In this document: one piece after another, positions 524 through 64,000 of the stretch | Layout: each line of letters opens with the position of its first letter | Numbering within the stretch: the stretch's first letter is position 1 | NCBI GenBank assembly: GCA_977016875.1 | Contig: CDRNST010000054.1 | Coordinates: 1,550,001-1,614,000, forward strand | DNA length: 64,000 nucleotides | Direction of reading: 5' to 3' | Origin: Pavona decussata | Lineage: Eukaryota | Position numbers and translations under genes: made by a program | The notes under the pieces: model-generated | What the model was told of the DNA's origin: nothing | What the model saw: the letters and a program-made list of their open reading frames with translations, nothing else | Database searches by the model: none

Positions 524-764
524 ATCCTTGTTGTGATGACTGGTGGAGCATGGCAAGATGACAGTGACTCAAAACTATACAGAACTAGAGTGTTAACGTC
601 AATCAAGGGCAGAGGCATTGAAGTGTATTCTGTGGGTGTAGGCCCAGATACCACTGCAAGCCAAATGAGTGATGTTGCTTCTGGAAGGAGATATTGGTTC
701 CTGCCGAACTCATATGATGATTTAGACAATGTTAAACTAAGGCTATTACAGTCCATCCAAGGAA
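524..764 (+). CDS. exon 1: vWA C-terminal half (phase 0-1)
   Basis: cag|ATC...GGA A|gtaagt; ILVVMTGG...[10 protein letters not shown]. Confidence 0.85.
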
Positions 765-3700
765 GTAAGTACAAAATGATGACAGGGGGAGGGGGCAGCT
801 TAACTTTCCACTTCAATACCTTAACTAGTGGTATTTTGAGCTTCTTTATGGTTTTATAAATGGCTTTTGTAAGATACACTATTGCTTTGAATAAATGCCT
901 GGAACATTGATTACAAACTCAGTACCTTGGTATAAGCATTTATTCACTGGAGGTGTTTAATTGTGACGGAGCATTTCTTTCCCAAGTAGTAATTGTGGAT
1001 GTTTATATTTAATATAAAAAAATTTTTTTTGTGTAACAAAAACAGTACCAAGTTTGACAATGATAAGTACGTACAGAGGTTAGAACTAAAACATTTGATA
1101 CCATTCTAAGTTCACAACTTTAGAAAGAGAAAGAAAAATTTGTTGTTATGTGTTTATGTCCTCCATAAAACGTCCCATCAGGAAATTTCACGTCCTAATC
1201 GTGCAGTGATGGCAAAGAAATTTACCAAAAAGTGTTATGGACATGCAGAGTTTTTGTTTTGGTTAGCAAGTCTTTTGCTTTTTAGACGTTCTTGTTGCTG
1301 TTGTTATTGCTAAAGCTCCCTACCATCCTCTATCACACCAATGTGGTTTCTAGTACCTGATCAATGGTATGGTGGAACAAGGGTCTCTGATATGTAGCTA
1401 CCTTGAAATTCAAGGGTCATAGTTGTCTTATTCTTGTGTTCTCATTTGAAGATGGCAATTATTTCTCAACTCAGCGACTATGTAATCTTCTCAACAACTT
1501 AGCATTAAACTGTATGTTGCTCATCATTATAGCCTGCAGATTGCAGATGTAATCCAGTTAGGGCCCATCAATCTTTAGTTTGAATTCTCCATTTTCAACT
1601 GGTCAGTTTGTGTAGGGTATTGCTAAGTAGAACTAAAGTGTTTATTTAAGAGTATGACCCTCCCAAAAAAAATATATAGTTGTGAATGTTACATCACTGT
1701 TCCGTGTGGACTGTAGATTGAAGACTTAGCCAAACTGGGGCCCATCTAATTACTTTGGTTTGCTTAAGTTTACCCTCTGTCTGTAGTCTTCAGTTTACCC
1801 TTAGTGTGCTATATTCGCCAGTGTGTCAATGGCTTTATAAAGTAGAACTCAGGTGTCTTTTTCTTTGATTTTTTTTTGCAGAGTATGATCCTCCCATGGA
1901 CCTTGGCCTGTTAGTAGACTCCTCCTCTGCTGTTGATTGGAGCAAAATGCAGGGCCTGTTGAAGGGTTATGTGCGAACCAGGAACATCTCTCCCGATGGT
2001 GATCATGTTGGCATTGTGACATTTGCATCAAGCAGCAGTGTTGACTTGTCCTTCCCTAAGTCAAGCAGCCCAGACTACAATAAAGGTCGTATCTGGCAAG
2101 CAATTGATGAACTGAGACAACAAGGAGGAAATGACAGGAGAATCGACTTGGGACTTGAAACTGTTTCCAGTGGCTTGTTTGGTTCTCATGCTGGAGCCAG
2201 AAAAGATGCCCGTCAGGTAAAACAAAACAAACGACAACAAATTAGCAAAGAAAGACCAAAACAAAACTATGCTATTGGCACTTTCCTGGTATGTTCTGCA
2301 TCTCCAATAGACGGGCTCTGGACAAGAACACCCACAGTGGCTTTTAAGTTTTAATTTTTTAGAATCTTTCACTTTTTCACCTGAATAAGAACATTCTAGT
2401 CTTATGTCAGGTTTGGGATTATTTTAACAGTAAAATACCCAATTTAACACCCAAACCTTAATTTAAACTTGGGGGTCTATGCCTGGTATATAAAGACCAG
2501 CTCCCTTTAACAAGCTCTCAAAATCTGCCCATTTGAGCCATAGCTGCCACTGGGGATGCTAATTGCAAACCAAATCCACACACCAGATGAAGTGTTCCAT
2601 GCAAACTGCATCGAACGGGGCCCTAATTTCTCCACTTATCATAGTCATGCTCTCTGGTGACACTTGCCTTTCTAACTACTGTGTACTCTCATAATGATTT
2701 TAGGTTTTGGTAGTGTTTACAGCCGGTGAATGGCCATCTATGACTCACCATGGCCAAATGTGGCAAAACACTGCAAAGGCTCTAGTGCAAAGGGGAGTTG
2801 AGATCTATTCGTATGGGATAAAACCAGGAGCACAATTGGAGCAACTACAAAGCATAACTTCCAAAGCTGGAAACAGTTATCTGATAGATGGCTATATGTT
2901 ACCACAGCCCATCCCTACTGGAGTCACAGGTGGGATTCACTTTCATCATTCAAGAGTTCAACTTAACTCTTTTATAACTCCAGTTCCCCAGCACATTAAG
3001 CCCATAGTGTAGACCATGTCATAGTGCCTTTTTAAAAGTAGTGCCCTACAGTAAGTTCACCATTCCCTTGTCAGTTTTTCAACAAGGCTTCTCAAACTCA
3101 TTAATAATTCAAAAGCCAAAGACAAAGGAAATCATGACCGTGACGTGTTTGGAAATCTGATGAAAAACTCCTTGTTTTTGCATCCTTAATTTCTCCTTCT
3201 AAATCAGTTTGTTTAAGAAGTTATATCAAACACTCGTCACAGTGTTTCATCACAATATAAAAAACCTCGAAGTTCGTCAAAAATACTCCGCTATGCATCA
3301 TATTTTCAACTCTCTTCTCGGTGTTTGATATGTGATGAAACACTGTGACTCGTGTTTGATATATGACATGAACAGACATCACTTTTCCTCGCAGGTGATC
3401 CCCGAGGAATGGACATAGGCTTTGTAGTGGACTCTTCAGATGCTGTAGACTGGAGCAAGATGTTAAACTACATAACAAATGTAGTTGAATACTTTTATGA
3501 CAACGTCAACTCAAACATTGGTATTGGACTAGTAACTTATGGTGAGACAGCAAAGGTTGCAATCCCTCTTAATTCAGTGAGTGGACCCAAGAATGATATC
3601 CTGAAGTCGATTGGAGATATCCAACAGCAGGGAGGATCACGTTCAGGTTTTAGTCAAGCAATGCAGTTGGTACCAAGTTTCTTTTCACCTCAGCAGGGCG

Positions 3701-21700: not shown

Positions 21701-24400
21701 TGGTTGGTAAATCTTGACTTTCAGAGTCTGCATGTTATTGAAAGGCGCAGTAAGCAAACAGACACCGAGTATGAATTTCCGCTATGGAGTTTGTTTTCTC
21801 AAGCGGTGTCCAGGTACAAATTACTAGCAGCCAGCTAGCCCCTAGAAAGAGCACTACTTTCACTTGATCTTGCCAGTCCCTGCATCCGAACCATGAACCC
21901 CATGCAGGACAAAACATTACACGTAACTGAGTGAAAAGTGAAAGAAAAAGAAAGGCCGGCATGAGACCAAAAAGGTCATGACAGAGAAAGATCATAAGCT
22001 CTAGGTATATTTCAGTTAATATTGGCACAACCTTTTCCCATCTGACTGCTGGAATACCACCCATTGTTGTTAATGTAAACTTGCTGTCAATGTTGCAGTA
22101 CTTACATGTAGATGTTTATGAGGGTACTTTTAAGTGTTAAAAAAATACAACAACAGCAACAGTCAAGGAGTCACACGAAAGGTTTGGATAGTTGCGAGTA
22201 TGGTTAAGAGCCATTAAAACGCTTTTTCAAATAAATTAATATGAGGACATATTGCACGAGCCTAGCAAAGTTTTCAGTTAAAGTTGTTACAGCTATCTAT
22301 TGTTAGACCAAGATGGCCCAAAAGAATGAGAAAGGTGAACTGAAATCGATAAATTAGGGATGAAGAGCACCCATATGAGAAAGTTGCTGTCAAGGTGTAG
22401 AAATTTAACGTTAATTCCGATTCAGCATTAGCTTGTGGACTGTGATCACGCAAGTGAGAAAAACAGCTACCGTAGAATTCCGAAAGTAACATTAATTTTT
22501 TATCTTTCTATTGAGCTCCGAAAGTAACAGCTCCGCCGAATGTAACGGCCACCCGAAAGTAATAGTCCCTCGAAAATGTGATAACTCAACAACAATAAAA
22601 AACTGGATTGTCTTTGATGTAACGTTTCAAGTGGTACTTTTGGATTCCATAAGACCATCCTCCAAATAAATTGTATCTGTTTCATTCGACTTAAAATGTG
22701 ATTAAAGTATTTAATGTAACATAAGTAACTCGGAACACGAAAAATGTCTCCTCTTTCTTACTCGAAAATCACCGATAGGCTTGTGCCATCAGTTGTAATA
22801 ACATTAAATTTGTATCAGCATTTTATTAGATGACGTAGAACAGCCTTCCAGACTTAAATAAGTCACTGAAACAGAAACTCTATGGCCTCAAGGGTAATGC
22901 GGATGGAAAAGCATGAGTGTAGGACTAAACAACATGCAGAATCATTTGTGATTGTATTTCAAACTTAACTGAATCCTACTGGAAACTATCATTCAGAAAA
23001 ACATTGCATGTTTCGGCTTAGTCAAATGATACAGCAGTTAGTTACGGTACAATATAAACATTATTTTCACTAAACAATACAATCATTTGGGGCCTTTTTT
23101 GTTACTCTTTGCTTTGCTCATGGGGGAGTTAATAACATGCAGAAACAGAGTGACCCTTTAATAAATAAACGTTTTTAACCATCCGAAAGTAATGGTTACC
23201 CACCCAAAAGAAACGGCCACCTGAAAGTAGCAGCTCCTTGGTCCTGCAAAATGTGAAAGTAACGGGGCTGTTACTTTCGCAATTCTACGGCACTTGCCAA
23301 ACTTGCAAAAACTCAAAACTAAAAACAACAACTGAATCCACGTTTTATCTGATGGTGTGGGACTTTTCCATGTCATAACATTTACCAAGTGCTGACTTGC
23401 TTGTATCCTTCTTTTCTTTAGGTACTTGTGGTCTTTGTTGGTAGCATTGCAACAAAGGACAATGAATCTGTTCCTCTCCCTGCTTCTGTAGATGAACTTA
23501 TCAGCGGAGGTGTGAAGATTATCCCAGTTGGTATGGGAAACAGCTATGACCCAGCAGAACTGATGGCCATAGCTAGTGATCCCAGGACAGTTTTTCCTCA
23601 GGATGCCGTGGATCAACTGAAGAGTGCAGTGAAAAATGCAGCCCTTCTTCCCACTGATGGAGGATTCCCTGGTAAAGTGATTTTTTTTTCTTCAAGGTCT
23701 AATGTCACATATAATTTGAAGTAACAAATGTTTAAAATTTGCCTCTGTGTTTCCTTATTTATGAACTGCCTCTAGACCACAAAGAGAGCACTGTTGATTG
23801 AACTTTTAGATGGACAGTGAGCTGCAATGTCTTAATTTCATTAAAGAAATAACAGGGGCTAACTTTTTCAAGTTAGATCCTATATCCATCCTGGCCATTA
23901 ATTTATATTTTCTGTGAATTAACAACTGCGTTGCTAAGTGGAGGTTGGGTGCCTGTGATACATAGGAGCTTCCACTTTTGGCAGCCTGCTCCTAGATGGA
24001 GACCGCTCCCATGGCTGCGAAATCCTGGCAACCCAGCCATGAGCCCACATGCGGCAGGGAAGAAAGCAGGCACCCGTCACACTGAGAACATCAGTGAAAA
24101 AGGGGAAGGGAAGGGGGAGGGAAGAAACCACTTATAAACTGAGTCACAATGTTAGTGAAACGCCCACGCTGAATAAAGCACGCTAAAAAGTACTAAATGC
24201 ACTAGACCACGCTAAGATGCATACTGGTCCCAGAGCATGACGGGTCTTGGTAGATGCGCATCTCGCAAACGTGCTGGCCAACGGGATGGAACAGGCCCTC
24301 CTTGTTCTTAACTCCATTTAATTGCATTTAACTGCATTTAACAACTGCGTTGCTAAGTTGAGGTTGGGTGCCTGTGATACCTAGCAGCTTCCACTATTGG

Positions 24401-24432
<32 letters not shown>

Positions 24433-27400
24433 ACTGGGAAATCCTTGCAACCCAGCAATGAGCCCCCACGCCAAGCCAGAGGACCTCAGGGCCAAACGTG
24501 AAAGGCCCGGAGAACAAGGGGTTCATGGTTAGAGGAAAGCTTGAGCCCCAACAAGAACGCCCAAATCCGAAGGCACCCAACCAAGATACATAAAGGGGTA
24601 TAAACACCATACCTGCTAAGATAGTCGACCGGCCACTGAGAGAATATTGTGTCCACTGGAGTCCGCCCATACAGCAAATAAGCTTCGCTTGACCAGCGAC
24701 CCATAGTTTTAATAAGATGGTAGGGAATTCTACGGCTGGCAGCAGTAGTAGCGGCTCCAATTCTAAAGCTATGACCAGAGAAATTGCCAGGGACACCGGC
24801 TGACTGTAGTGTAGATTTTAAGAATGCAAAGAGCTTGGATCTAGAAAGATGAGAGCCATCCTGATAAAGAAATAGAGGTCCAGGGCCTGGTCCACGAAGG
24901 TGAAGGTAATTTACCAAGGAAATCACAGGGCATAGAGGGGCGGAACCACGACTAAGAAAGATGAAGCAGCCCTTTCGGAAAGGGTCTTTCTCGGAGCACT
25001 TGATAACCATGCGGACACTTTGAGGGTTCAAAGGGGCGTCAACCCGTATGTCATCAAGAGTCAAATGCCGAGAAGGATCAAAAGGACTATTGGCTGTAAA
25101 TTCACCCCCTCCGAGGAAGCCAAAGAAGCCAACACAGCAGGCGGCCCATAACATGACGTCAGGATTTAAAAGATCCAGAGACCTGTGTAGGACCAACATG
25201 AGATCTGCAGTCACCGGCTGGCACTGGGTCAGGTTGGAACCCTGGTGACGTTTAATCCCACGAAGGAGACGCTGCAGTTGAAGAGAAGTAGGGAGTGGGT
25301 CAGGGAAGCCATAGTCAATGTGTAGGGAGCGAACTGCTGATAAATAGACTTTGATGGATGAATGATGAAAGCGATCCACTAAATGGGTACAGAAGCGCAT
25401 CAACAATTGTTCGCTGGCTGGCAGTGTGGCCAACTCTAACTAAAAGATACATCCTGGCTGCAAAATTCCGAAAATTGACGCTGGGCAGAGGCATAAACCT
25501 GTCGAGTGGACGAGGCCAAACCATTTGCCAAGTAAAAACGGCATTTTTCCGTCAAACCACCGGAAGCTGGTTCAGCAGTGATGGGGGTACTGGAGTTGCT
25601 CCAGGGACAGCTTGAGGTGCGAGATGACGAAAGCGCTGAAAATCAAAACGGGATAACAAGGCAGCAATGGAATTGTCCGTCCCGGCTGTATGACAGGCAG
25701 TAAAAACAAAGGACTGACAAGCTGCAATGAGCGACAGGTGACCAAGAAGAACCATCATGTTATGATCCCTGGAGGTGCCCGAGCGCAAAACACTGACTAC
25801 AGCCATGACTGACTACAGTCATGACTACAGTCATGACTGACTACAGCCATGAAACTCAACAAATTTTGAGACCCAGAGATGGCCCCACTTATGAGCGGCC
25901 ACTACCACGGGAAATCATTCCTTGTAGGCGATAGACAAAGGTTGTTGAGCAGAAGACCATTTGCCAACAAGCCACTGGTCATTAAAAATGGCCCCATAAC
26001 CCCGTGCACCAGCAGCATCGGAAGAGATGTGAAAGTCAGGTAGAGGCGCCCACTGCGGGGCCAGTAGAAAACTGAAGCCATCCCAGGAATTGAAAAATTG
26101 TCTCTACCAGGTAAGGTCAGAACGAAAGTCACGGTTCAGCCTGATTGGGTGGTCATCCCGTTGAAAGGCGGACAGCAAATTAATCATTTGACGCAAAAAA
26201 GTCCGACCAGGAGGAACCACTTTACAAGCGTGTCGGAGATGGCCAATTAGAGTTTCCAGTTCCTTCCTTGTGCAGTGCTGTTTACAAGAACAGGTGTCTA
26301 AAAGGGCAGCGATACGATCAAACTTCTCCTGAGGGAGGCGAGCCCGAAGGTCCATTGAGTCCAATTTGATGCCTAGGACGGTCAGACACGTGGAAGGGCC
26401 CTCGAGCTTATCAGGGTGAGAGGGGATACCCCAAGCTGAAAACTGACGAACACAGATATCCAGGTTTTGTTGACAAACAGGAGAATCAGAACGTCCTAAG
26501 GTATAGAAGTCATCCAGGTAGTGTAACAGCAATTGAACTTCATAATTGTGTTTGAGAATCCACTCAAGCAGGTCAGCAAAGGAAGAGAATATGAATGGAG
26601 CCGAGCGTAAATCGAAGGGTAGGGCCAAGTCGATAAAGTAGTCCCACCCGCCATTTCATGCCTAACAGGTAACGGTCATGAGAATGGACAGGAATGATAG
26701 GATAAGCGCTTTCTACGTCAAATTTAGCCAAAAGAGTTCCCTGACCTTGGGTCATGATGCCATCAATGATATTGTCCACGTTCATGTACTGAACTGAAAA
26801 CGGGTCTTTGGGAATTCCGTCATTAACACTGTGACCTTGGGGACTAGACAGGTTCAAAATAAGCCTCCACTTTCTGGGCTGGTATTTCTTCGGAATTATT
26901 CAGACCAGCAACACGACCCTTCTCGAGTTCAGTGAGGAGATACTGGTCAATTACCGAAGGCTGAAGAAATGCCGTAGGCATGTTTTGAATTGCAGATTTT
27001 AAGGAAACGGACTCTGGGATGAAACCAAGACGAAAACCAAAGCTAAGGCCAGAAATGACCCAGCCCACCAACGCTTGATTAGGATGAAGGCGTAACTCAT
27101 GCTGAAGTTTGTGGGCGTCAATTGGGGTAACCATGGATGGAGGGACCAGTTCTTGATGCACGGAACGTGAGGAGGACAATGTGAAGCCAGGAGAGCAGAC
27201 TGGCGTTAATTGGCACTGGGCAGGTAATTCGTTAATTGAAAGGGGGGCATTCACCGAATAGGTCAACAGATCACTCGAAGCCAGAACTGAATGTGACGTA
27301 TTTACACTATGTTCAGATGAGAACTGGCACGTGGCAGGTAAATCAGTAACAGAAGGAGAAGCGTTATCAGAAACGGTGAACAAACTGTCTTCAGATTGAA

Positions 27401-30400
27401 CAGAACATAACGTATGTACACTATGTACAAGATCCTTTTGACCAGTACCACTATGAGGAATGGCCACCATGTCAACGCTGCTGGCGCTTACTCTGAGTCG
27501 GGGTAGCCGAGCAGGAGCGCTGGATTTGTGACCCGGATGCCTGAAAAGGACAGTTAACGCGGGGATGATCACCTTCACACTTCTCGCAGCAGTGACGGTA
27601 GCGGCACTGACCAAAGGGCCAGCGGCAGGCCCCATCATTCCATGAACAGCAGAAATTGGACGACAAGGCCGAGAAACGAAAGGGCTGCGGTGAGCCATTT
27701 GAGGAGAAGCCAGACTGAATGGGTGAAGAGCGAGTATGAAAATTGTAAAGATCCAAATTCATGCGGGACTAATCAGTCAGACCAGAAGCAGCTGCATCCC
27801 TACGAAAGGCAATGTCGTAGTGAAACCAGGCTTTTTTAGAGAATTGGCGTGAGGTCTTAATAATTAACAGCTTGTATTTGGTGAGATCTTGCCACCTGGA
27901 AGGATGTGCGCTGCAAAAGATCCAAGAGAAGATGGTGAACACCTCAACCCAGGTAATGATATCTGTAATCTCCTGGACCCTCTTCTCAGAAGATGAAACC
28001 AGAAGTTTGCTATCCAAATAAGTGTGGGGTTCTGATTCTCGAGCCTTAAGGTTTTCTGCCAGCAAGTCAGCCAAATCAAAAAACTGGCCAGATCTGATCT
28101 TCGTCACCAGCTTCTCTGGGATGGGTGAATATCCAGGTCCCACAACAAATGGCCTAATTAGAGATCGCACCGCACAAATAGTAGAAGTAGAAGGGATGGA
28201 AGACCCTCAAAGGGGCAAAGAAGTGCCATAACCGCCAGATGTAGCCAGTGTTCTGCTAGTTGCAACGCCAGAACCACACGAAGATGGTGCCCCCACGATA
28301 GAAGGGTTGCATAGGGACGAATATCTTAAAGTACAATAGGTAGAAATAAAAGAAGGTAATGGCCGGCAGGAGAACGAACCAGTATTAGAAGATGTTGACA
28401 ACGGAGTAACATTTCCCGCCAACGGAGATATCGCCGAAGCTGATGCGGTAGTTGTAGAATGGGCCTGCATAGCCACGAGAATTTGCGGTAAAGACTCGCC
28501 TAACGCTTGAGAAAAAGCAGCGGCCAGATCCTGCTTGGACAGGGTAAAGGAAGACAAGGAAGTCGCTGTAGCAAAACGAGGCAAAGAACTAGTGTTGGAA
28601 GGCGATGAAACCGAGGAGTCCTCATGTGATTCCAACATGGCGGCTACGCTGTTATTCGTGGAACGGGTCGTGCGCCTTTCACCCATGGAAATTACAAGAA
28701 ACCAATGCTAAGAAACCGCTTATAAACTGAGTCACAATGTTTGTGATACGCCCACGCTGAATAAGCTAAGAGACCGCTTATAAACTGAGTTGCAATGTTT
28801 GTGAAACGCCCACGCTGAATAAGCTAGGAAACCGCTTATAAACTGAGTCACAATGTTAGTGAAACGCCCAAGCTGAATAAAGCACGCTAAAAAGTACTAA
28901 ATGCACTAGACCACGCTAAGATGCATACTGGTCCCAGAGCATGACGGGTGTTGGTACATGCGCATCTCGCAAATGCCACTGGCCAGTGGGATGGAACAGG
29001 CGTTCCTTGTTGTTAACTCTGTTAAATTGCATTAAACTGCATTTAAAATAACCATTTCCTTGATGAAAATTGTATTATAAAATTGTCCAACTTGAAAGGT
29101 GGGAAAACTCCCAAAATACAAAGAGAACCTGAAGGCAGTACTACTCAGTGATTTTGATTCTGAATTTTTTTGTACAGCTCAAGTTGCATATGCAGAATGG
29201 TCCCTTTCATTGCTGGTTTTCACTTACTAGGCTTTTCTTGTATAGCATAATGAACAACACCACAGAGAAAAAGTAGTTACTTAACCTGTACTATGATGGG
29301 GCTTTTTGTACAGCACGATAAAAGATACCATGGAAACAAAGTTCTCTTAAGCCTTATCATCATTGTAATGAATTGTGCGACTCACAATCTTATAAGGTCG
29401 GGCCAAACAAAAACAAGAGACTTGAAGAGTTGAAGGATGAGAGTTGGACAAGAGTTTTCATAAGTCTTTAGACTGGGTAAAGTGGAAGGAAACCCTCTAG
29501 AAAACTTTGAAGAGGCTAAACGCTGAAGAAGTGATAAGATTTGAGGAGAGAGTATGAGAGTCTCAGGCCAAACAAGTGTGCTTGCTCATTTTTCTCAGTT
29601 TTAAGGTTAGGTGACTTTTGGTTGACTCTGTGAATGAAAAAAAGAAATTAATGCTGGTTGTTGGTAATGGATTTAAAAGCGAAGGGAGTGTTAATAACTG
29701 ATCAACACTTCTCCATATTTTAGTCCCAGAGGTAACAGCATGCCAAGAAGCAGTTGAAAAGGCCCTTCAAACATCTGCCAGTCCTGAGCGTTTTGTGCCG
29801 CGCTGCAAAGAGGATGGTAGGTTTGAAGAAGTACAGTGTTCAGAGATCACAGGAGAATGCTGGTGTGTTGACAGTCTTGGAGTGGAACTACGTGGAACCA
29901 GGTCACAGGAATTTATCACCTGTCCTGGAATGGGTAAGTGGATGATGACGATAATGATGATGAGATCATGCTGACAATGACATGAGTATGGTGGTTTTGG
30001 TGGGGATGATGAGAGTGACCATGGCGATGGTGTCAATGATGTCATCATGGTGTCAGCATGAAGAAATCATGTTGACATTTCTATCATAAATTTGTTATAT
30101 AAATTAACCTGTAGTTTTGCTTCATATTAAAATGACTATTTGTTGACGAAGTCATGGTGTTAAGGTAACATTTGAGTTTATAGAACATTAGACAAAAATT
30201 TTGTGTATCGGAGTACTTTTGAATTAAATTTTTGTTTCAGCAAAACCAAAGTAATCATTCTAACTACTCTGTATTCTGTTATGTGTTACCCTCTTTAAAT
30301 AAAGTTGTTACTTTCTTACTTACTTACTTACTTTCTTACTTACTTACTTGCTTACTTACTTACAAAAGATGAAAACAGCACGATGTAACCAATTAGAAAG

Positions 30401-49961: not shown

Positions 49962-50000
<39 letters not shown>

Positions 50001-52159: not shown

Positions 52160-52198
<39 letters not shown>

Positions 52199-61100: not shown

Positions 61101-64000
61101 GCGGCTATTGGGTTTCTTTTTTATATCTATTTTTTAACATGTTTATAAATAACATGTCTCCTGGTGACAATTTGTTAAGAATCTGTAGCCGTAAACTGAG
61201 ATTAAAATCTGCTTCATAGTTCTTGCTGATGGTGACAGATGGAGACCAGACAAAAGATGAGCCGTTTACTCCCCTAGCAAGAGCTGCCGAAAAGGTGAAA
61301 GAAAAAGACGTGGAAGTTATTGCATTCTCCACCAAGTCAGAAGATGAAATCAATGTTGATGATCTGAGGGATATTGCTTCTGGAGATGGAGATGAGAACG
61401 TGTTTCTTGTCACACCCAGTGATCCGGCGCCTGCTATCACTACAAAGATAACAAGCAAAGTTAAGAGCCTAGTGAGAGGTAAGGAGAAGGACACTTACGA
61501 AAAAGGATTGTTTGCCTCATTTTACTCCAATGGTAGCTCTTTGATATGAATCAATGCTACTTTTGTCTTATCAATATTGCCGTAAAAGGGAGGTCGACGG
61601 GTAGTTCCAGTGAAATCCTTATTGTTTTAAACTACTGCCTGTCTACCCATCTTTCAGTGCTGCTTTTCATCTGATCCCTTGCCTCTTCAAATAAACCATC
61701 AAGGAAGACCCTCTCTTGTTACGTAGAAGGCGATGTGGATCAGATGCCCATGTGGAAATAACCCTCATCCTGCCTTTATTGATTTGTAACAGACACAATA
61801 GGTATTTAAAGTCCCTGGGATTCTGGTACAGTCTTGGTACCACCCTCACTAAAAAAGCACCTCTCAGTATTTACCATTCTGAAGATGGCAGTTGTAAGTG
61901 ACGTTCAAGACATTGAGGTTATTAAATTCTTAAAGAAACTACTGTATTTTGTTTGATTTTTTCAGAGCGTATTTATCCAGTGGATATTGCTTTCTTGATC
62001 GGATCTTCTTCAACAACCACCGATGAACAGTGGAAATCCACGCTGGACTTTGTCAAATCGATCGCTGACCAATTCCCAGTGTCTGACATAGGGGCCCGCA
62101 TTGGAGTGATATCCTTTGATACTACTCCAAGAGTTGGGTTTGCATTCGATGCCTTATCTGGCCCTCAGCTAAATAACTTTGAAGTCCGAAGATTGATAGA
62201 CAGCGTTCCCTACGGTAATGGCCCTACCAGAATTGACCGTGCCTTGAAGCTTGCCAGCACATTCCTCTTCACACCTGAAGGCGGAGCAAGAAAGAATTCA
62301 ATGAAGGTATAAACAGTGGCCTTCTTATTTTGGAACATAGAAAGAATTTTAATCCTTAACTCAAAAAATATTGGTTGAGTTAAAATGTGTAAGCAGTCCG
62401 GAATTCTGTTTTGTAAAATATCGAATAATACAGCCCCACCAAACAGCTTCGTTTTCCACAGAGACAAACATTACAATTATGTTACGATAGTTGCCATCAT
62501 CATCGTTATTGTCATCATGATCATCATTGTCAATTATTTTCTTGAATAGGTTAATATATACAACTCTGAAATCAATGAATGAAATAGGAGTGAACTTAAA
62601 CCAAATGGTTCGCTTTCACAATCTAATTGACACGCTTGTTTCCCAAATAACTTCTGTGAGTAATCTGTAAACAAATTATACTATTGCAAAACAAGGGCAT
62701 CGTGAGCAATTACTAGACCTAGAAATGTTCTTACTCACAGGAATTCACAATGAGACGTCTCCGATTTGAGCTTACGGAATAGGGTTGATTTCTTTGAGTA
62801 AATATTTGTGAGACCTTGTTTTGTTCTTGTTGTTCAAGCAAGTGCATGCAGTCGTATTGACTTATTGTTTATGTTTGTCATGGCGACATAACAAATACGG
62901 TGATTGACTGAAATCTGCTTTAGTGGTCGCTTGAGGAAGGTCGTTCCCTCCTTAAGAAAGATATTCTACTAGAATTTCAATCGTTCTTGTTTTTCCTTTA
63001 CTTTTGACTTAAAAAGTCGTAAGGACACTTAATCAAATTCCTCTTTTTTGCAGCTACTATTTGTAATTACTGACTCTGGACAAGCCCCCGATCAAAAGCC
63101 GTCAACACCACTTGACCAAGCTTCTCAGCCTCTGAAGGACAGAGGAGTTCAGATATATGCTCTTGCTATTGGAGGAATGGTTCCTGAAGAGAACTTACGA
63201 GACATTACCTCAAAACCACAGAACATTTTTACTCCTGCAAACTCTGTTGATGATCTACCTCAGCGTCAGCCCAGAATAGTAGATGACTGGAAAACATACT
63301 TGAGAGGTTAGAAAAGTCATTTTGAATTTTGTAATCAGTGTAACTGAATGATTAGCTCTGTTAACCTACTGATATTTTGTCACATGTTGGAAAGAATAGG
63401 TTAAAGATGCTTGAAAGAAGTGTGTGGTACCATGATAGCTCGATTTTTAGAGAAACTAAAATTGTAATTCATTTGCTTGTATCTCTTTAGTTCAAACTTT
63501 TAAAGACTTTTGTCTGGTTATTGTTTCGGGACGTGGAAAACGAAATTGTTCCAAACATAGCACTCTTCCTTTTATGATTCAGCCACAGCATATTTATGTC
63601 TCAACTTTAAGACACATTTGGAACGATCTGTTGGCGCATGTTGTAGTTCCAATGAATGGTCCTGTGATATCAAGGGAAAACTAATGAATATGGTTCGATT
63701 GGAACAGAACATTTTGGTGATAAGGAGATAGCATGATAACAAGCTTGAAATTCATGGACATGAACATAAATGGACGGTTAGTTTTGTAAACCCATTATTC
63801 TCCCAAATTCTTGTTAGATCTCTAGTTTGTTTTCTTTCTTTTGAAGATCGCTGGGCAGGTGTAGACATTGGTTTTGTAGTGGAGGCTTCAGACAATGTGA
63901 CACCAGAGCTATGGACAAACTTCCTGAACATTGTAAAGAGGACAGTAGACCGTTTCCATGTTGCGCCAAGGTCTGCAAACATTGGAATGGTCACTTTTGG
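524..64000 (+). CDS. Giant multi-exon gene (partial at both ends) encoding a vWA / thyroglobulin type-1 repeat mosaic protein: 63 exons in window, 9 complete + 2 partial vWA domains, 43 TY domains, about 4,900 aa
   Basis: Exons joined by hand at AG/GT sites keep a consistent phase throughout, with no internal stops. TY exons carry C-x(n)-P-x-C-x3-G-x-[YF]-x3-QC-x(4-8)-C[WFY]C[VST][DN]-x2-G. vWA exons carry a D[IL]GF[VL]VD-like beta-A strand, RIDLAL and GAR motifs. No start or stop codon of the gene lies in the window. Confidence 0.9.
1882..2216 (+). CDS. exon 2: vWA N-half (1-0)
   Basis: gcag|AG TAT...CGT CAG|gtaaaa; [10 protein letters not shown]...RIDLGL...GAR. Confidence 0.88.
2704..2929 (+). 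CDS. exon 3: vWA C-half (0-1)
   Basis: tag|GTT TTG...ACA G|gtggga; VLVVFTAG...GVEIYSYGI. Confidence 0.82.
3222..3363. repeat. Imperfect inverted-repeat (MITE-like) element; related copy at about 32038-32160
   Basis: tatatcaaacactcgtcacagtgtttcatcac ... gtgatgaaacactgtgactcgtgtttgatata. Confidence 0.65.
3395..3720 (+). CDS. exon 4: vWA N-half (1-0)
   Basis: gcag|GT GAT...GAG|gtaaat; [11 protein letters not shown]. Confidence 0.88.
4233..4470 (+). CDS. exon 5: vWA C-half (0-1)
   Basis: ttag|GTA TTG...AGA G|gtgtgt; VLIVLT...[10 protein letters not shown]. Confidence 0.85.
4816..5141 (+). CDS. exon 6: vWA N-half (1-0)
   Basis: tcag|GT CCC...AAG|gtaaca; [12 protein letters not shown]...RVDLAL. 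Confidence 0.88.
6113..6329 (+). CDS. exon 7: vWA C-half (0-1)
   Basis: tttcag|GGT ATA...ACA G|gtattc; [10 protein letters not shown]. Confidence 0.85.
6365..6865 (+). mobile_element. 5'-truncated, decayed L2/CR1-type LINE 3' end
   Basis: Translates as [24 protein letters not shown]...LMYKI...AP.L, and after disruptions ...LKQSFSY...MLWNNLPE...FKK, the typical C-terminus of CR1/L2 ORF2. Ends with AATAAA followed by an (ATGT)n tail near 6843-6865. Confidence 0.7.
7051..7269 (+). CDS. exon 8: TY domain 1 (1-1)
   Basis: cag|CT AAA...ACA G|gtatga; [23 protein letters not shown]. Confidence 0.88.
8506..8703 (+). CDS. exon 9: TY domain 2 (1-1), absent from ORF track
   Basis: cacag|GT ATA...GCT G|gtaggt; [25 protein letters not shown]. 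Confidence 0.85.
8891..9057. repeat. Near-perfect palindromic (foldback/MITE-like) repeat
   Basis: Arms of about 80 bp (gaatagtattcatctgatttgtctcagtgcagga... / ...tcctgcactgagacaaatcagatgaataccattc). Related non-palindromic copies lie at about 42470-42625 and 57450-57600. Confidence 0.8.
9417..9623 (+). CDS. exon 10: TY domain 3 (1-1)
   Basis: ccag|GG AAG...CCA G|gtaagc; [23 protein letters not shown]. Confidence 0.88.
10247..10593 (+). CDS. exon 11: vWA N-half (1-0)
   Basis: atag|GT GGC...AAG|gtaaat; [10 protein letters not shown]...RIDLAL. Confidence 0.88.
11572..11809 (+). CDS. exon 12: vWA C-half (0-1)
   Basis: tcag|GTT GCT...CAA G|gtaaac; [10 protein letters not shown]. Confidence 0.88.
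12423..12757 (+). CDS. exon 13: vWA N-half (1-0)
   Basis: tcag|GT CGT...CAG|gtatgt; [11 protein letters not shown]. Confidence 0.88.
12767..13249. mobile_element. Non-autonomous piggyBac-like element (MITE)
   Basis: TTAA on both sides (12763-12766, 13250-13253). Imperfect TIRs CCCTTCAATCCCTAA / TTAGGGGTTAAAGGG with CCC...GGG termini. Confidence 0.75.
13730..13955 (+). CDS. exon 14: vWA C-half (0-1)
   Basis: ccag|ATC GTT...AAA G|gtgtgt; IVILFISG...GVSVFVL. Confidence 0.85.
14560..14766 (+). CDS. exon 15: TY domain 4 (1-1)
   Basis: ttag|AA TCT...ATA G|gtgagt; [13 protein letters not shown]. Confidence 0.87.
15337..15552 (+). CDS. exon 16: TY domain 5 (1-1)
   Basis: ttag|GG AGA...CCA G|gtaaat; [11 protein letters not shown]. 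Confidence 0.87.
16335..16538 (+). CDS. exon 17: TY domain 6 (1-1)
   Basis: ttag|CA CTT...CCG G|gtgagc; [11 protein letters not shown]. Confidence 0.87.
16650..16850 (+). CDS. exon 18: TY domain 7 (1-1)
   Basis: gcag|AT GAA...CAA A|gtaagc; [13 protein letters not shown]. Confidence 0.87.
17277..17492 (+). CDS. exon 19: TY domain 8 (1-1)
   Basis: gcag|AA GAC...CCT G|gtcagt; [11 protein letters not shown]. Confidence 0.87.
17926..18129 (+). CDS. exon 20: TY domain 9 (1-1)
   Basis: gcag|GA AAG...ACT G|gtaata; [13 protein letters not shown]. Confidence 0.87.
18641..18847 (+). CDS. exon 21: TY domain 10 (1-1)
   Basis: ccag|CA CCA...CCA A|gtgagt; [13 protein letters not shown]. Confidence 0.87.
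19427..19639 (+). CDS. exon 22: TY domain 11 (1-1)
   Basis: atag|TG TGG...CCA G|gtagaa; [13 protein letters not shown]. Confidence 0.87.
20113..20459 (+). CDS. exon 23: vWA N-half (1-0)
   Basis: tcag|AT AAT...CAG|gttagt; [11 protein letters not shown]. Confidence 0.87.
20744..21683 (-). mobile_element. L1/Tx1-clade LINE insertion, 5'-truncated and 5'-inverted, with 16-bp TSD
   Basis: TSD tgctgagctgattgat at 20744-20759 and 21668-21683. Poly(T) to 20779, AATAAA and the ORF2 end ([14 protein letters not shown]) lie on the minus strand. The ORF2 C-terminal zinc-binding region ([13 protein letters not shown]...CLYC...HTFIDC) lies on the plus strand at about 21006-21670. Confidence 0.88.
22470..23290. 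mobile_element. Non-autonomous Tc1/mariner/pogo-like DNA transposon (MITE)
   Basis: TIRs CCGTAGAATTCCGAAAGTAAC / GTTACTTTCGCAATTCTACGG, TA on the left and CA (decayed TA) on the right. Subterminal GAAAGTAA repeats at both ends. Confidence 0.75.
23422..23671 (+). CDS. exon 24: vWA C-half (0-1)
   Basis: ttag|GTA CTT...CCT G|gtaaag; [10 protein letters not shown]. Confidence 0.87.
24620..25557 (-). pseudogene. Tyrosine recombinase (YR) ORF of the Ngaro element, frameshifted
   Basis: N-terminus [22 protein letters not shown] in a different frame from the body. Motifs [10 protein letters not shown] and [12 protein letters not shown] present. The catalytic Arg box reads GFLGGGEF rather than the usual GFLRxxEF. 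Confidence 0.85.
25552..27470 (-). pseudogene. RT/RNase H ORF of the Ngaro element, multiple frameshifts
   Basis: Fragments in different frames: [45 protein letters not shown]...[14 protein letters not shown]. Confidence 0.85.
27472..28686 (-). pseudogene. gag-like ORF1 of the Ngaro element, two in-frame stops
   Basis: Three ORF-track pieces in one frame separated by TGA codons. [30 protein letters not shown] and a C-terminal Cys/His finger CCSWNDGAC...[20 protein letters not shown]. Confidence 0.8.
28707..28880. repeat. Three tandem copies of a 58-bp unit in the Ngaro 5' leader
   Basis: gctaagaaaccgcttataaactgagtcacaatgtttgtga..cgcccacgctgaataa starts at 28707, 28765 and 28823. Confidence 0.85.
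29724..29933 (+). CDS. exon 25: TY domain 12 (1-1)
   Basis: ttag|TC CCA...ATG G|gtaagt; [25 protein letters not shown]. Confidence 0.87.
30308..30363. repeat. (TTAC)n microsatellite after AATAAA, probable LINE 3' tail remnant
   Basis: aataaagttgttactttcttacttacttac... Confidence 0.6.
30643..30828 (+). CDS. exon 26: TY domain 13 (1-1)
   Basis: acag|GT ACC...GCA G|gtattt; [11 protein letters not shown]. Confidence 0.87.
31400..31995 (-). mobile_element. Solo A+B terminal-repeat remnant (or non-autonomous copy) of a second Ngaro-like family
   Basis: Bounded by TTAA at both ends. Shares tggaggttgggtg, gcaacccagccatgagc, aggcacccgtcacactga and the terminal ttgttaact..gttaaattgca with the 23919-29046 element in the same order. 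No coding remnants. Confidence 0.7.
32347..32556 (+). CDS. exon 27: TY domain 14 (1-1)
   Basis: ccag|AA GAG...CCA G|gtatgt; [11 protein letters not shown]. Confidence 0.87.
33461..33676 (+). CDS. exon 28: TY domain 15 (1-1)
   Basis: aaag|GT AAA...AAT G|gtaagc; [11 protein letters not shown]. Confidence 0.85.
34128..34337 (+). CDS. exon 29: TY domain 16 (1-1)
   Basis: ccag|AA CAA...CCA G|gtacaa; [13 protein letters not shown]. Confidence 0.87.
34902..35099 (+). CDS. exon 30: TY domain 17 (1-1)
   Basis: gtag|AT TCT...CCA G|gtaagt; [25 protein letters not shown]. Confidence 0.87.
35203..35442. mobile_element. PIF/Harbinger-like MITE
   Basis: TIRs GGGCCCGTTTCTTGAAAGTCC / GGACTTTCAAGAAACGGGCCC with a 3-bp CAG TSD (35200-35202, 35443-35445). 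Confidence 0.8.
36106..36324 (+). CDS. exon 31: TY domain 18 (1-1)
   Basis: acag|AG AAA...TTT G|gtatgt; [13 protein letters not shown]. Confidence 0.87.
37458..37718 (+). CDS. exon 32: Pro-rich linker + TY domain 19 (1-1)
   Basis: gaag|GT CTT CCA CCA CCT CCA...AAT G|gtaagt; [13 protein letters not shown]. Confidence 0.82.
38382..38597 (+). CDS. exon 33: TY domain 20 (1-1)
   Basis: gcag|CT AAT...CAT T|gtaagt; [13 protein letters not shown]. Confidence 0.87.
39218..39418 (+). CDS. exon 34: TY domain 21 (1-1)
   Basis: atag|CT GGT...GCA G|gtatgc; [13 protein letters not shown]. Confidence 0.87.
40065..40277 (+). CDS. exon 35: TY domain 22 (1-1)
   Basis: ttag|CT GGA...TCA G|gtaaag; [25 protein letters not shown]. 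Confidence 0.87.
40488..40700 (+). CDS. exon 36: TY domain 23 (1-1)
   Basis: acag|TG ACC...CCA G|gtatct; [11 protein letters not shown]. Confidence 0.87.
41154..41369 (+). CDS. exon 37: TY domain 24 (1-1)
   Basis: caag|CT GTT (the nearby in-phase acceptor)...AAA G|gtaagt; [13 protein letters not shown]. Confidence 0.8.
41722..41937 (+). CDS. exon 38: TY domain 25 (1-1)
   Basis: gcag|GT CCA...CCT G|gtaggg; [13 protein letters not shown]. Confidence 0.87.
42757..42981 (+). CDS. exon 39: TY domain 26 (1-1)
   Basis: ccag|CT GGA...TCA G|gtagga; [16 protein letters not shown]. Confidence 0.87.
43205..43491. mobile_element. MITE with 6-bp TSD (possibly hAT-related; superfamily uncertain)
   Basis: TIRs CAGGGTTCGTAC / GTACGAATCCTG, TSD TATGCA (43199-43204, 43492-43497), many internal (AAAG)TCATGGAA repeats. 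Confidence 0.75.
43640..43855 (+). CDS. exon 40: TY domain 27 (1-1)
   Basis: ttag|CA CCA...CTA G|gtaaca; [13 protein letters not shown]. Confidence 0.87.
43935..44095 (-). mobile_element. SINE-like repeat fragment
   Basis: Minus strand reads GGGGAGCATGGATGAC...CTCTCCTCCCACTAATGTGGCCC...GAGTTTGTTGTTGGTTCTC...TACTCTGGTTTTCCC...AAATTCCAATT. This resembles abundant anthozoan tRNA-derived SINEs (recognised from memory, not searched). Confidence 0.55.
44529..44759 (+). CDS. exon 41: TY domain 28 (1-1)
   Basis: gtag|GA ACT...ACT G|gtgagt; [13 protein letters not shown]. Confidence 0.82.
45127..45303. repeat. Near-perfect palindromic MITE-like repeat
   Basis: aatagaccatttccgagttgctgtgaacctca... 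/ ...tgaggttcacagcaactcggaaatagcctatt, arms of about 80 bp. Confidence 0.85.
46512..46721 (+). CDS. exon 42: TY domain 29 (1-1)
   Basis: acag|AA ACC...ACT G|gtacgc; [13 protein letters not shown]. Confidence 0.87.
47277..47492 (+). CDS. exon 43: TY domain 30 (1-1)
   Basis: ccag|CT GGA...GAA G|gtaggt; [25 protein letters not shown]. Confidence 0.87.
48290..48505 (+). CDS. exon 44: TY domain 31 (1-1)
   Basis: ttag|GC CAA...CCA G|gtaaag; [13 protein letters not shown]. Confidence 0.87.
48694..48974. mobile_element. Decayed TA-flanked MITE with an internal G-run
   Basis: TA|CAATCCTGGGCAA ... TTGGTCAGGGTTG|TA. A related decayed copy with caacattg plus poly-G lies at about 15790-16020. Confidence 0.5.
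49306..49515 (+). CDS. exon 45: TY domain 32 (1-1); alternative in-frame acceptor at 49201
   Basis: gaag|AT GAA...ATA G|gtatgt; [13 protein letters not shown]. Confidence 0.8.
49962..50000. repeat. (AATC)n microsatellite
   Basis: aatcaatcaatc... about 9 units. Confidence 0.85.
50380..50595 (+). CDS. exon 46: TY domain 33 (1-1)
   Basis: acag|CT CAG...GAT G|gttagt; [12 protein letters not shown]. Confidence 0.87.
51281..51493 (+). CDS. exon 47: TY domain 34 (1-1), absent from ORF track
   Basis: acag|CT GGA...CCA G|gtttgt; [25 protein letters not shown]. Confidence 0.87.
51715..51921 (+). CDS. exon 48: TY domain 35 (1-1)
   Basis: acag|CG AAT...CCA G|gtatcc; [11 protein letters not shown]. 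Confidence 0.87.
52124..52200. repeat. Poly-C run followed by an (AAAT)n microsatellite
   Basis: Run of about 17 C, then aaataaataaat... Confidence 0.8.
52393..52638 (+). CDS. exon 49: TY domain 36 with a long first loop (1-1)
   Basis: ctag|GA GTT...ATG G|gtaact; [13 protein letters not shown]. Confidence 0.87.
53223..53435 (+). CDS. exon 50: TY domain 37 (1-1)
   Basis: acag|CT GGT...ATG G|gtaagt; [13 protein letters not shown]. Confidence 0.87.
54101..54313 (+). CDS. exon 51: TY domain 38 (1-1)
   Basis: gtag|CT GGC...AAA G|gtttgt; [13 protein letters not shown]. Confidence 0.87.
54873..55088 (+). CDS. exon 52: TY domain 39 (1-1)
   Basis: tcag|AT GAA...GAA G|gtacgt; [16 protein letters not shown]. 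Confidence 0.87.
55582..55806 (+). CDS. exon 53: TY domain 40 (1-1)
   Basis: ctag|TT TTG...ACT G|gtaaag; [13 protein letters not shown]. Confidence 0.87.
56140..56352 (+). CDS. exon 54: TY domain 41 (1-1), GC splice donor
   Basis: ccag|CT GGT...ACA G|gcgagt; [13 protein letters not shown]. Confidence 0.8.
56884..57105 (+). CDS. exon 55: TY domain 42 (1-1)
   Basis: atag|GT GAC...GTT G|gtgagt; [23 protein letters not shown]. Confidence 0.87.
57940..58128 (+). CDS. exon 56: TY domain 43 (1-1)
   Basis: acag|AA AGT...TGT G|gtaaga; [13 protein letters not shown]. Confidence 0.85.
59270..59604 (+). CDS. exon 57: vWA N-half (1-0)
   Basis: gcag|AA CCT...AAG|gtaaga; ADVALVIDY...RIDKAL...GARPGVPK. 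Confidence 0.88.
59996..60257 (+). CDS. exon 58: vWA C-half (0-1)
   Basis: acag|TTT CTT...TCA G|gtgagt; GIKVYSVGI. Confidence 0.87.
60461..60804 (+). CDS. exon 59: vWA N-half (1-0)
   Basis: acag|AT CTG...AAG|gtacct; ADIGIVIA...RLDLGL. Confidence 0.87.
61220..61478 (+). CDS. exon 60: vWA C-half (0-1)
   Basis: atag|TTC TTG...AGA G|gtaagg; [10 protein letters not shown]. Confidence 0.85.
61966..62306 (+). CDS. exon 61: vWA N-half (1-0)
   Basis: tcag|AG CGT...AAG|gtataa; [10 protein letters not shown]...RIDRAL...GAR. Confidence 0.88.
63054..63306 (+). CDS. exon 62: vWA C-half (0-1)
   Basis: gcag|CTA CTA...AGA G|gttaga; LLFVITDSG...[10 protein letters not shown]. Confidence 0.87.
63847..64000 (+). 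CDS. exon 63 (runs off window): vWA N-half
   Basis: gaag|AT CGC...; [25 protein letters not shown]. Confidence 0.85.

Follow-up and report, generated by a model that had tools for sequence, protein, structure and literature searches.

We analysed 64,000 nucleotides of the genome of the coral Pavona decussata (positions 1550001-1614000 of contig CDRNST010000054.1, here C54, + strand, from a genome assembly of 602 Mb), a stretch that we refer to at its full length as the window. It encodes 43 thyroglobulin type-1 (TY) domains and 11 von Willebrand factor A (vWA) domains, two of the latter partial, in 63 exons, of which 62 are complete and one is cut by the window end. In our preferred interpretation, to which we assign a probability of roughly 0.55, the window is the middle of one very large + strand gene for a secreted, matrix-anchored, multi-class protease inhibitor. 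Positions are given relative to the window, with negative numbers lying upstream of it, and domains (T for TY, V for vWA) are numbered from the start of the gene rather than from that of the window.

The TY repeats are marked by a CWCV-type motif, which was found 40 times in stop-free + strand frames, one of these being spurious, and 0 times on the - strand; four further repeats carry CWCS, CWCT or CFCT, giving 43 TY segments in total. All 43 matched Pfam Thyroglobulin_1 (PF00086; best E 2.6e-21). For the vWA domains, 17 of 20 half-domain segments matched Pfam VWA (PF00092) at E <= 0.001, and all 20 matched our custom vWA hidden Markov models (HMMs), a result that is circular for the window because the HMMs were built from the same segments. 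Domain searches were run exon by exon, and the joined translation was used just for counting length, stops and cysteines. Scans of 110 open reading frame (ORF) segments on both strands of the window found no other domain family besides transposon proteins.

All of these exons lie on the + strand. The window opens with the C-half exon of V5 (524..764; acceptor 524, phase-1 donor 764), which was matched by the vWA C-half HMM and is counted in the Pfam VWA tally, and whose N-half exon, also on the + strand, lies upstream of the window at about -517..-183. The six exons of V6-V8 follow (1882-2216, 2704-2929, 3395-3720, 4233-4470, 4816-5141 and 6113-6329), supported by Pfam VWA (for example E 8.4e-14 for segment 1869-2351) and with splice sites exactly as projected from RNA-verified exons. 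Next come T7-T9 (7060-7269, 8506-8703 and 9417-9623; Pfam Thyroglobulin_1, phase 1-1) and V9-V10 (10247-10593, 11572-11809, 12423-12757 and 13730-13955). T10-T17, assigned by Pfam and splice phases, occupy 14560-14766, 15337-15552, 16335-16538, 16650-16850, 17277-17492, 17926-18129, 18641-18847 and 19427-19639, and are followed by V11, whose N exon (20113-20459) and C exon (23422-23671) are separated by a 3-kb intron; V9-V10 and V11 were both placed by Pfam or custom HMM together with the splice model. From 29730 to 58128 there is an unbroken run of 32 TY domains, T18-T49, one per exon (first 29730-29933, last 57940-58128), each matching Pfam Thyroglobulin_1 and each with six cysteines and phase 1-1. 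The window closes with the six exons of V12-V14 (59270-59604, 59996-60257, 60461-60804, 61220-61478, 61966-62306 and 63054-63306; Pfam VWA), the first four of which, with the start of the fifth, are backed by RNA joints, and with the N-half exon of V15 (63847..64000; custom HMM and splice model), which is cut by the window end, runs on to 64187 and is followed by its C half at 64745-64997.

The exon structure is highly regular. Each TY module occupies a single exon, entered and left in phase 1, with the donor about 10 nt past the sixth cysteine, and each vWA domain is an N exon (phase 1 to 0) followed by a C exon (phase 0 to 1), such that every module is phase 1-1 overall; the vWA N exon stops just ahead of a GT that would read as Val. 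In the window the model uses 61 GT donors, 1 GC donor and 62 AG acceptors. Automatic splice-site picking was base-exact for all seven exons that are fully verified by RNA, and the donor at 61478 was set from RNA contigs rather than from the automatic pick. Joined together, the 62 complete exons form a stop-free frame of 4,859 codons (14,578 nt). Among random 70-codon frames of the window only 5.9% lack a stop, and therefore chance cannot explain the open 62-exon frame. The same exons hold 258 cysteines, or 43 x 6, six in each TY domain, leaving none for the window's nine complete vWA domains or the C-half exon of V5. An earlier description made from the window's letters (the sequence-only reading) had proposed at least 43 TY and at least 11 vWA domains in 63 exons with a run of 32 TY, in one stop-free frame of about 4,900 residues with six cysteines per TY; the Pfam and HMM searches and the splice model reproduced the domain and exon counts exactly, and the Pfam families it named were recovered.

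Public RNA data provide direct evidence for splicing. At least 19 public runs contain all or part of 55500-61500, and 14 of them are RNA or guessed to be RNA; each of these 14 contains 12-19% of the sampled words from this interval, the exonic fraction of which is about 36%. Metatranscriptomes annotated as 'coral metagenome' contain part of the stretch, and the nearest relatives in the databases are stony corals. We mapped RNA, as assembled contigs, from four runs of four studies onto this 6-kb interval, and in three of the four (X1, X5 and X9, from three studies) we found spliced contigs with GT..AG joints at the modelled sites. Splicing was seen in this way for four TY exons (55582-55806, 56140-56352, 56884-57105 and 57940-58128) and for the first four exons of V12-V14, all on the + strand, and a single 3,622-nt contig covers these four TY and four vWA exons before entering the exon at 61966. 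TY and vWA exons are thus co-transcribed and spliced as modelled at the T49/V12 boundary. The intron at 56353-56883, after T47, is GC..AG, and was seen in spliced contigs of three runs, whereas the 61 other donors in the window are GT. Inside this GC-AG intron, 56358-56408 matches very many unrelated RNA contigs, with a summed depth of about 30,000 in one coral metatranscriptome, and belongs to a repeat or transcribed element of high abundance.

The array continues well beyond the window. We examined 100 kb of upstream flank and 70 kb of downstream flank, the latter reaching the contig end, and ran the custom HMMs over the resulting 234 kb. The contig holds 57 TY domains, 31 vWA N halves and 30 C halves from -21,162 to its end, with N and C halves pairing regularly along it; all are on the + strand, and the same HMMs found no TY or vWA domain on the - strand across the 234 kb. 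The domain string of the gene reads V, 6 TY, 7 V, 3 TY, 2 V, 8 TY, V, 32 TY, 5 V, 8 TY, 15 V, the last vWA being cut by the contig end. When joined, the 118 TY and vWA domain exons give 9,938 codons with no stop. The gene spans at least 170 kb on the contig and its 3' end lies off it; the whole array would form one continuous transcript.

Downstream of the window, further inhibitor-type and EGF exons are interspersed on the + strand, all of phase 1-1: a WAP exon (78126-78287), two follistatin/Kazal exons (81192-81401 and about 85.7-85.95 kb) and two EGF exons (126733-126858 and 128533-128655). ORF scans of the flanks (-32 kb to 0 and 64-134 kb; 94 + strand segments) found only inhibitor and EGF exons beyond the TY and vWA exons. 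This stretch also includes V20-V25, six units at 90,044-99,270 in which five N exons are identical, that of V25 is 93% identical, and five of six intervals measure 1.78 kb; these are either very recent tandem duplications or an assembly artefact.

This downstream part bears on whether the contig carries one gene or two or more adjacent genes in the same direction, the first of inhibitor, TY and vWA modules ending at about 77.6 kb and the next, of WAP, vWA, Kazal and EGF modules, beginning at about 78 kb. We consider such a division, under which the actual proteins would be smaller, unlikely. It would be in keeping with the last TY domain, T57, being degenerate, with four cysteines, and being followed by the fresh WAP exon, with the very young duplicates V20-V25 in a tail that is unlike the ancient TY blocks, and with the restriction of RNA evidence to 55.5-61.5 kb. 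Public gene models also split the orthologous loci, into 1,307 and at least 452 aa in the sea anemone Actinostola and into 6,838 and 840 aa in Porites evermanni. Yet phase 1-1 holds for all exons found, those for WAP, Kazal and EGF domains in the tail included, the frame stays open over the 9,938 codons, and the gaps on either side of the WAP exon, about 550 bp back to T57 and about 770 bp on to the next vWA, are of a size that is ordinary for introns of this gene. No start exon or stop-bearing terminal exon was noted between the blocks, where no dedicated search was made, and within the window RNA bridges a boundary between a TY and a vWA block. The division moreover concerns sequence outside the window, the coding content of which it leaves unaffected.

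Returning to a single gene, its 3' part may continue on other contigs. The assembly breaks inside the gene because the end of C54 (133,180-134,000) sits in a high-copy transposon, of which copies 95-99% identical occur on dozens of contigs. Near-identical vWA exons go on in contig C473 and at the start of contig C306, where C306:2400-7700 holds three vWA domains up to 97% identical to the C54 tail. The last vWA exon on C306 reads into a stop at 7621, with AATAAA at 7689, and this stop is a candidate 3' end without a membrane anchor, its linkage to C54 being hypothetical. Arrays of vWA exons 80-97% identical to the tail were also observed on C473 (- strand, ~6.8-83 kb), at C251:923-931 kb and at C248:339.8 kb, and may represent a haplotig, paralogues or the gene's missing middle part.

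Upstream of the TY and vWA array we found Kazal, Kunitz and two WAP exons in this genome, all confirmed by Pfam. Their context is given by L032, a contig obtained by scanning JGI metagenome contigs with the first vWA exon. L032 is an intron-free contig of 2,205 nt from a related coral, 81-88% identical at the nucleotide level, with a single ORF. Its product starts with a signal peptide, followed by WAP, follistatin/Kazal, Ig, Kunitz, WAP and WAP domains and then by the first vWA, in which the N half runs directly into the C half; the spliced vWA matches Pfam VWA at E 5e-24. In the related coral, therefore, the inhibitor cassette shares an mRNA with the first vWA, by this cDNA-type evidence, and the signal peptide of its transcript indicates that the encoded protein is predicted to be secreted. 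By comparison with L032, the first WAP exon of this genome is at -35,417..-35,238, which places the start of the gene upstream of -35.4 kb; a candidate signal-peptide exon at about -30,929 was rejected, as L032 does not support it. A genomic contig from a related coral, L033, carries Kunitz, WAP, WAP, V1 and then T1-T5. The Ig exon of the P. decussata cassette, at about -26,509..-26,250, is broken by stops and frame changes while the adjoining Kazal and Kunitz exons are intact, and has either decayed as a cassette exon or been misassembled. Another contig, L034 (JGI Ga0099821_1012051), carries a 2,336-codon VPS13-like ORF and, at its very end, 94 nt of the first vWA exon; being probably a chimera of metatranscriptome assembly, it was set aside.

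The cassette recalls WFIKKN1/2 (GASP), which consist of WAP, follistatin/Kazal, Ig, Kunitz, Kunitz and NTR domains. The order WAP, Kazal, Ig, Kunitz is common to WFIKKN and L032, a likeness of domain order only; no NTR domain was found here, and the coral cassette instead goes on with WAP, WAP and then the TY and vWA arrays. The sequence-only reading had held that a secreted-type mosaic gene runs past both window edges, and this agrees with the TY and vWA exons from -21,162 to the contig end, with the signal peptide of L032 and with the expressed, spliced TY-vWA contigs. It had also suggested looking outside the window for a signal peptide, a transmembrane segment or a glycosylphosphatidylinositol anchor; the first was found, in the related coral, and the candidate 3' end on C306 is without a membrane anchor.

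We next compared the array with that of other hexacorals. Among the 150 best matches of a TY profile search, the sole protein with both TY and vWA domains was a hypothetical protein of Actinostola sp. (KAK3737699.1; 1,307 aa), which also has a Kunitz domain. Its locus, L026, reads Kazal, Kunitz, WAP, V, 6 TY, V, 3 TY, 2 V, 8 TY, V and at least 6 TY. When each anemone TY domain was compared with the 57 coral candidates, 16 of 23 had the same-numbered coral TY as best match and 4 more had it second, where about 0.4 would be expected by chance. These include seven of the eight domains at T10-T17 as well as T18, T20, T21 and T23; the seventh anemone TY has T7 as its best match, and the eighth has T8 second. 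Three of the five anemone vWA domains best match V1, V9 (the third) and V11 (the fifth), and the second and fourth both best match V4, with V10 second. Within the coral gene the TY repeats are old, with a median pairwise identity of 36%, a maximum of 54% and no super-repeat. From the same-numbered matches and the age of the repeats we therefore conclude that, as judged by sequence comparison, the block architecture and the identity of individual TY domains were in place before sea anemones and stony corals diverged. The seven coral domains V2-V8 occupy the place of one vWA in the anemone, and it is the vWA blocks that expand.

In Porites evermanni (CALNXI010000707.1), an 840-aa vWA-only model (P0198) lies 1.85 kb downstream of the 6,838-aa model on the same strand, and its vWA exons are 70-83% identical to the tail exons of the window gene; the 6,838-aa model is putatively orthologous, by its position beside this vWA tail. 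The orthologous models of Actinostola and Porites are automatic, fragmentary, unnamed and uncharacterised.

The same comparison speaks to the idea that the array is decaying and unselected, the product of exon duplication. T57 is degenerate, one vWA N exon near 118.2 kb is truncated, the upstream Ig remnant is broken by stops, and transposons sit in the introns, all of which could be read in this way. Against it stand the 0 stops in 118 exons, the exactly six cysteines in 55 of 57 TY domains, the expression and correct splicing of the gene, and the fact that the repeats, old as they are, have kept positional orthologues in a sea anemone. We consider decay very improbable, and rejected a pseudogene on the open exons, kept cysteines, splicing and anemone orthology.

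We then asked what the TY domains might do in the inhibitor that we favour. In an alignment of 55 TY domains, the six cysteine columns and the Q of the QC signature are invariant, and by these features (six cysteines, QC...CWCV) the repeats are assigned to type 1A. An AlphaFold2 model of T43 (53225-53434; pLDDT 93.4) had as its top Foldseek match in the PDB 1ICF chain I, the p41 fragment in complex with cathepsin L (TM 0.76/0.82, 43% identity; 68 aligned columns, root-mean-square deviation 2.3 A), followed by TY domains of thyroglobulin and saxiphilin. A TY profile search of PDB sequences gave 1ICF at E 7e-20, with thyroglobulin as the top match. The model thus predicts the TY wedge fold for T43. 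The thyropins (MEROPS I31; equistatin, p41/1ICF) resemble the window's TY domains in type 1A fold, six cysteines and QC...CWCV. Those thyropins with shown activity have one to three TY domains. Inhibition of cysteine or aspartic cathepsins is known for the TY domains of equistatin, which is from a sea anemone, and for those of p41, saxiphilin and testican (PMC10889554). In the mesoglea of adult Nematostella, the enriched protease inhibitors include proteins with thyroglobulin repeats (PMC12549020), and in the mucus, nematocyst and tissue proteomes of sea anemones few domains are commoner among uncharacterised proteins than TY and vWA (PMC11857728).

Taken together, these features suggest the following mechanism. 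The WAP, Kazal and Kunitz domains would block serine proteases, and the 57 individually conserved TY domains may wedge into papain-like cysteine proteases, and possibly aspartic ones, in the manner of thyropins. The vWA blocks, which mostly lack a complete metal-ion-dependent adhesion site (MIDAS) and within the window have no cysteine, could use protein-protein contacts to fix the molecule in extracellular matrix or mucus or to polymerise it there. Inhibitor, TY and vWA modules together would then make up a stationary multi-class protease buffer. We infer inhibition, its targets, the anchoring, the tissue and the continuity of the whole array. The sequence-only reading had suggested a polyvalent protease inhibitor or ligand-binding scaffold, putatively tethered to matrix, mucus or egg coat, and the inhibitor idea is plausible and is strengthened by the WAP/Kazal/Kunitz cassette, the downstream WAP and Kazal domains and the p41-like TY fold.

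Several observations weigh against this interpretation. An exon with the start codon was not found in this genome, the 3' end of the gene is on another contig, and RNA covers 6 kb of the gene only, as assembled contigs. At about 78 kb the TY run gives way to a WAP exon and a vWA/Kazal series, possibly a second gene, and the public models split the loci as described above. Inhibition is predicted from domain content and fold, and likeness of fold does not show activity; many TY domains, such as those of thyroglobulin, nidogen and IGFBPs, have non-inhibitory roles (PMC10889554).

This last point is shared with the possibility that the gene product is chiefly a structural matrix protein, forming filaments or a network like collagen VI or matrilin but with no collagen helix, in which the TY domains serve as rigid, disulfide-bonded spacers or ligand-binding modules and the few WAP, Kazal and Kunitz domains are accessory, as is the Kunitz domain of collagen VI alpha-3. 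Collagen VI alpha-3, -5 and -6 have long vWA arrays, and alpha-3 has a Kunitz domain. The window gene is like collagen VI in having tandem vWA domains and Kunitz; collagen VI, on the other hand, lacks TY domains. The at least 31 vWA domains account for over half of the predicted mass. As with many vWA domains of the matrix, most have no canonical MIDAS, which consists of DxSxS plus T and D further downstream: DxSxS is present in 9 of 31 (V1, V4, V5, V8, V18, V19, V26, V27 and V30), among those complete in the window in V8 only, and the TDG aspartate is also absent in most of the 31. The missing MIDAS bears on the mode of binding and not on membership of the vWA family. Collagen VI chains were among the sequence matches of the anemone and Porites proteins, and the tail has two EGF exons.

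A mainly structural role is nevertheless harder to square with the spread of inhibitor-type domains over the protein, five at the N terminus plus one WAP and two Kazal domains downstream, with a paralogue (below) that also pairs TY with Kunitz and WAP domains, and with a TY fold closest to a proven thyropin. Nor did the ORF scans of the window and flanks (-32 kb to 0 and 64-134 kb) show any collagen, fibronectin or other structural repeat; for the Collagen (Gly-X-Y) family, exons shorter than about 70 codons would escape these scans. We regard a chiefly structural protein as possible but on the doubtful side, and note that the inhibitor and structural roles are compatible with each other.

The conservation with the anemone also carries information about the individual TY domains. 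Because it holds module by module, the TY repeats are not interchangeable copies but individually maintained units. Few long repeat proteins behave in this way, and it speaks for partners specific to each module. A speculative extension of the anchored inhibitor, which we think rather improbable, is an 'inhibitor library' of more than 10,000 residues, in which each of the 57 TY domains is kept for its own target, a protease of the animal, a symbiont or a pathogen, and the vWA blocks fix the array in mucus or mesoglea. Distinct targets would explain why each TY has kept its identity and position since the ancestor of anemones and stony corals, the coral vWA expansions and the young 1.78-kb duplications might tune anchoring, and skipping of phase 1-1 cassette exons could give a variable repertoire.

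To place the gene among known families, we searched 1.84 billion representative proteins with the TY profile and considered the best 150 matches, a list that omits the cnidarian 26-TY paralogues and so is neither exhaustive nor proof of uniqueness; homologue searches covered proteins of up to about 4,000 aa. The largest TY count in these matches was 26, and none of the coral proteins among them had more than about 10. One close relative is a conserved hexacorallian paralogue family of about 2,250-2,650 aa, labelled 'Equistatin' or 'thyroglobulin-like', with WAP, Ig and Kunitz domains followed by 17 TY, one vWA and 9 TY. Its members, which have 21-26 TY domains, include Nematostella 'thyroglobulin isoform X2', Stylophora 'Equistatin' and an uncharacterised protein of Montipora foliosa; the Stylophora model has 13 and 8 TY around the vWA, and in the Nematostella model WAP and Ig were not detected by Pfam. 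The coral members are like the window gene in combining WAP, Kunitz, TY and vWA domains in one secreted-type protein; they differ in a fixed layout with a single vWA, where the window gene alternates blocks drawn from 57 TY and at least 31 vWA domains.

The orthologue of this family in P. decussata is at C306:39.9-71.9 kb (39,899-71,904), with 58-76% identity to the Montipora protein, and by sequence the window gene is therefore placed as a paralogue of the 17 TY-vWA-9 TY family at a separate locus. This paralogue, which also has WAP, Ig and Kunitz domains, begins about 32 kb past the tail-like vWA exons of C306, on the same strand, and the two genes are probably neighbours.

Vertebrate thyroglobulin, which has 11 TY domains, also resembles the window gene in its long TY array. 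No cholinesterase-like domain and no type 2 or 3 repeat was found in the 110 window or 94 flank ORF segments, and the 3' part seen on C306 is vWA. Predicted 'thyroglobulin-like' proteins of fish and frogs reach 26 TY domains, those of fish being TY only, whereas the window gene has more than twice as many TY domains and adds vWA and inhibitor domains. Two further candidates were discarded: the echinoderm protein P0101 as a bridge, which shares almost no 5-residue words with the coral domains, and P0004 (24 TY) as a relative, which is an intronless gene on an unrelated metagenome contig.

These comparisons qualify the novelty of the gene. The sequence-only reading had called the architecture undescribed; this stands insofar as no characterised protein was found to have it, and falls short insofar as orthologous models and the 26-TY paralogue are already in public annotations. 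The window gene is an extreme variant of known multidomain inhibitor and matrix proteins and not a wholly new kind of system. Its 57 TY domains nevertheless form the largest TY array found by a wide margin, compared with 26 among the best 150 matches and 11 in thyroglobulin, and few predicted cnidarian proteins are larger than its product. For Tg1 proteins, a 2024 survey gives 'up to more than a dozen' repeats (PMC10889554). If the product is indeed an anchored multi-class inhibitor, it would bear on the control of proteolysis at the mucus and tissue surface of corals, on matrix remodelling and on microbial proteases in disease. The gene is also a test case for how thyropin specificity diversifies and for what makes gene prediction break up giant genes of symmetric phase.

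Other clusters of TY exons were observed elsewhere in the genome, at C15:2.877-2.895 Mb, C486:1.400-1.405 Mb and C54:1.001-1.007 Mb and also on C28, C86 and C44, and presumably belong to separate TY-containing genes.

Finally, the introns of the window contain mobile elements. A retrotransposon on the - strand occupies 23919..29046 in the intron between V11 and T18; it is non-coding for the gene, has a GC content of 0.49 against 0.39 around it, and carries long minus-strand ORFs, one of which (24489-25439, - strand) matches Pfam Phage_integrase (tyrosine recombinase) at E 1.7e-5, its score of 25.1 bits falling short of the curated threshold of 27.1. The V11 intron contains a LINE-type reverse-transcriptase remnant on the + strand (20967-21707), with a 247-codon ORF matching Pfam zf-RVT. 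At 1115-1322 there is an interspersed repeat of about 210 bp, SINE- or MITE-like, of which at least 39 further copies, 82-89% identical, are scattered over many contigs.

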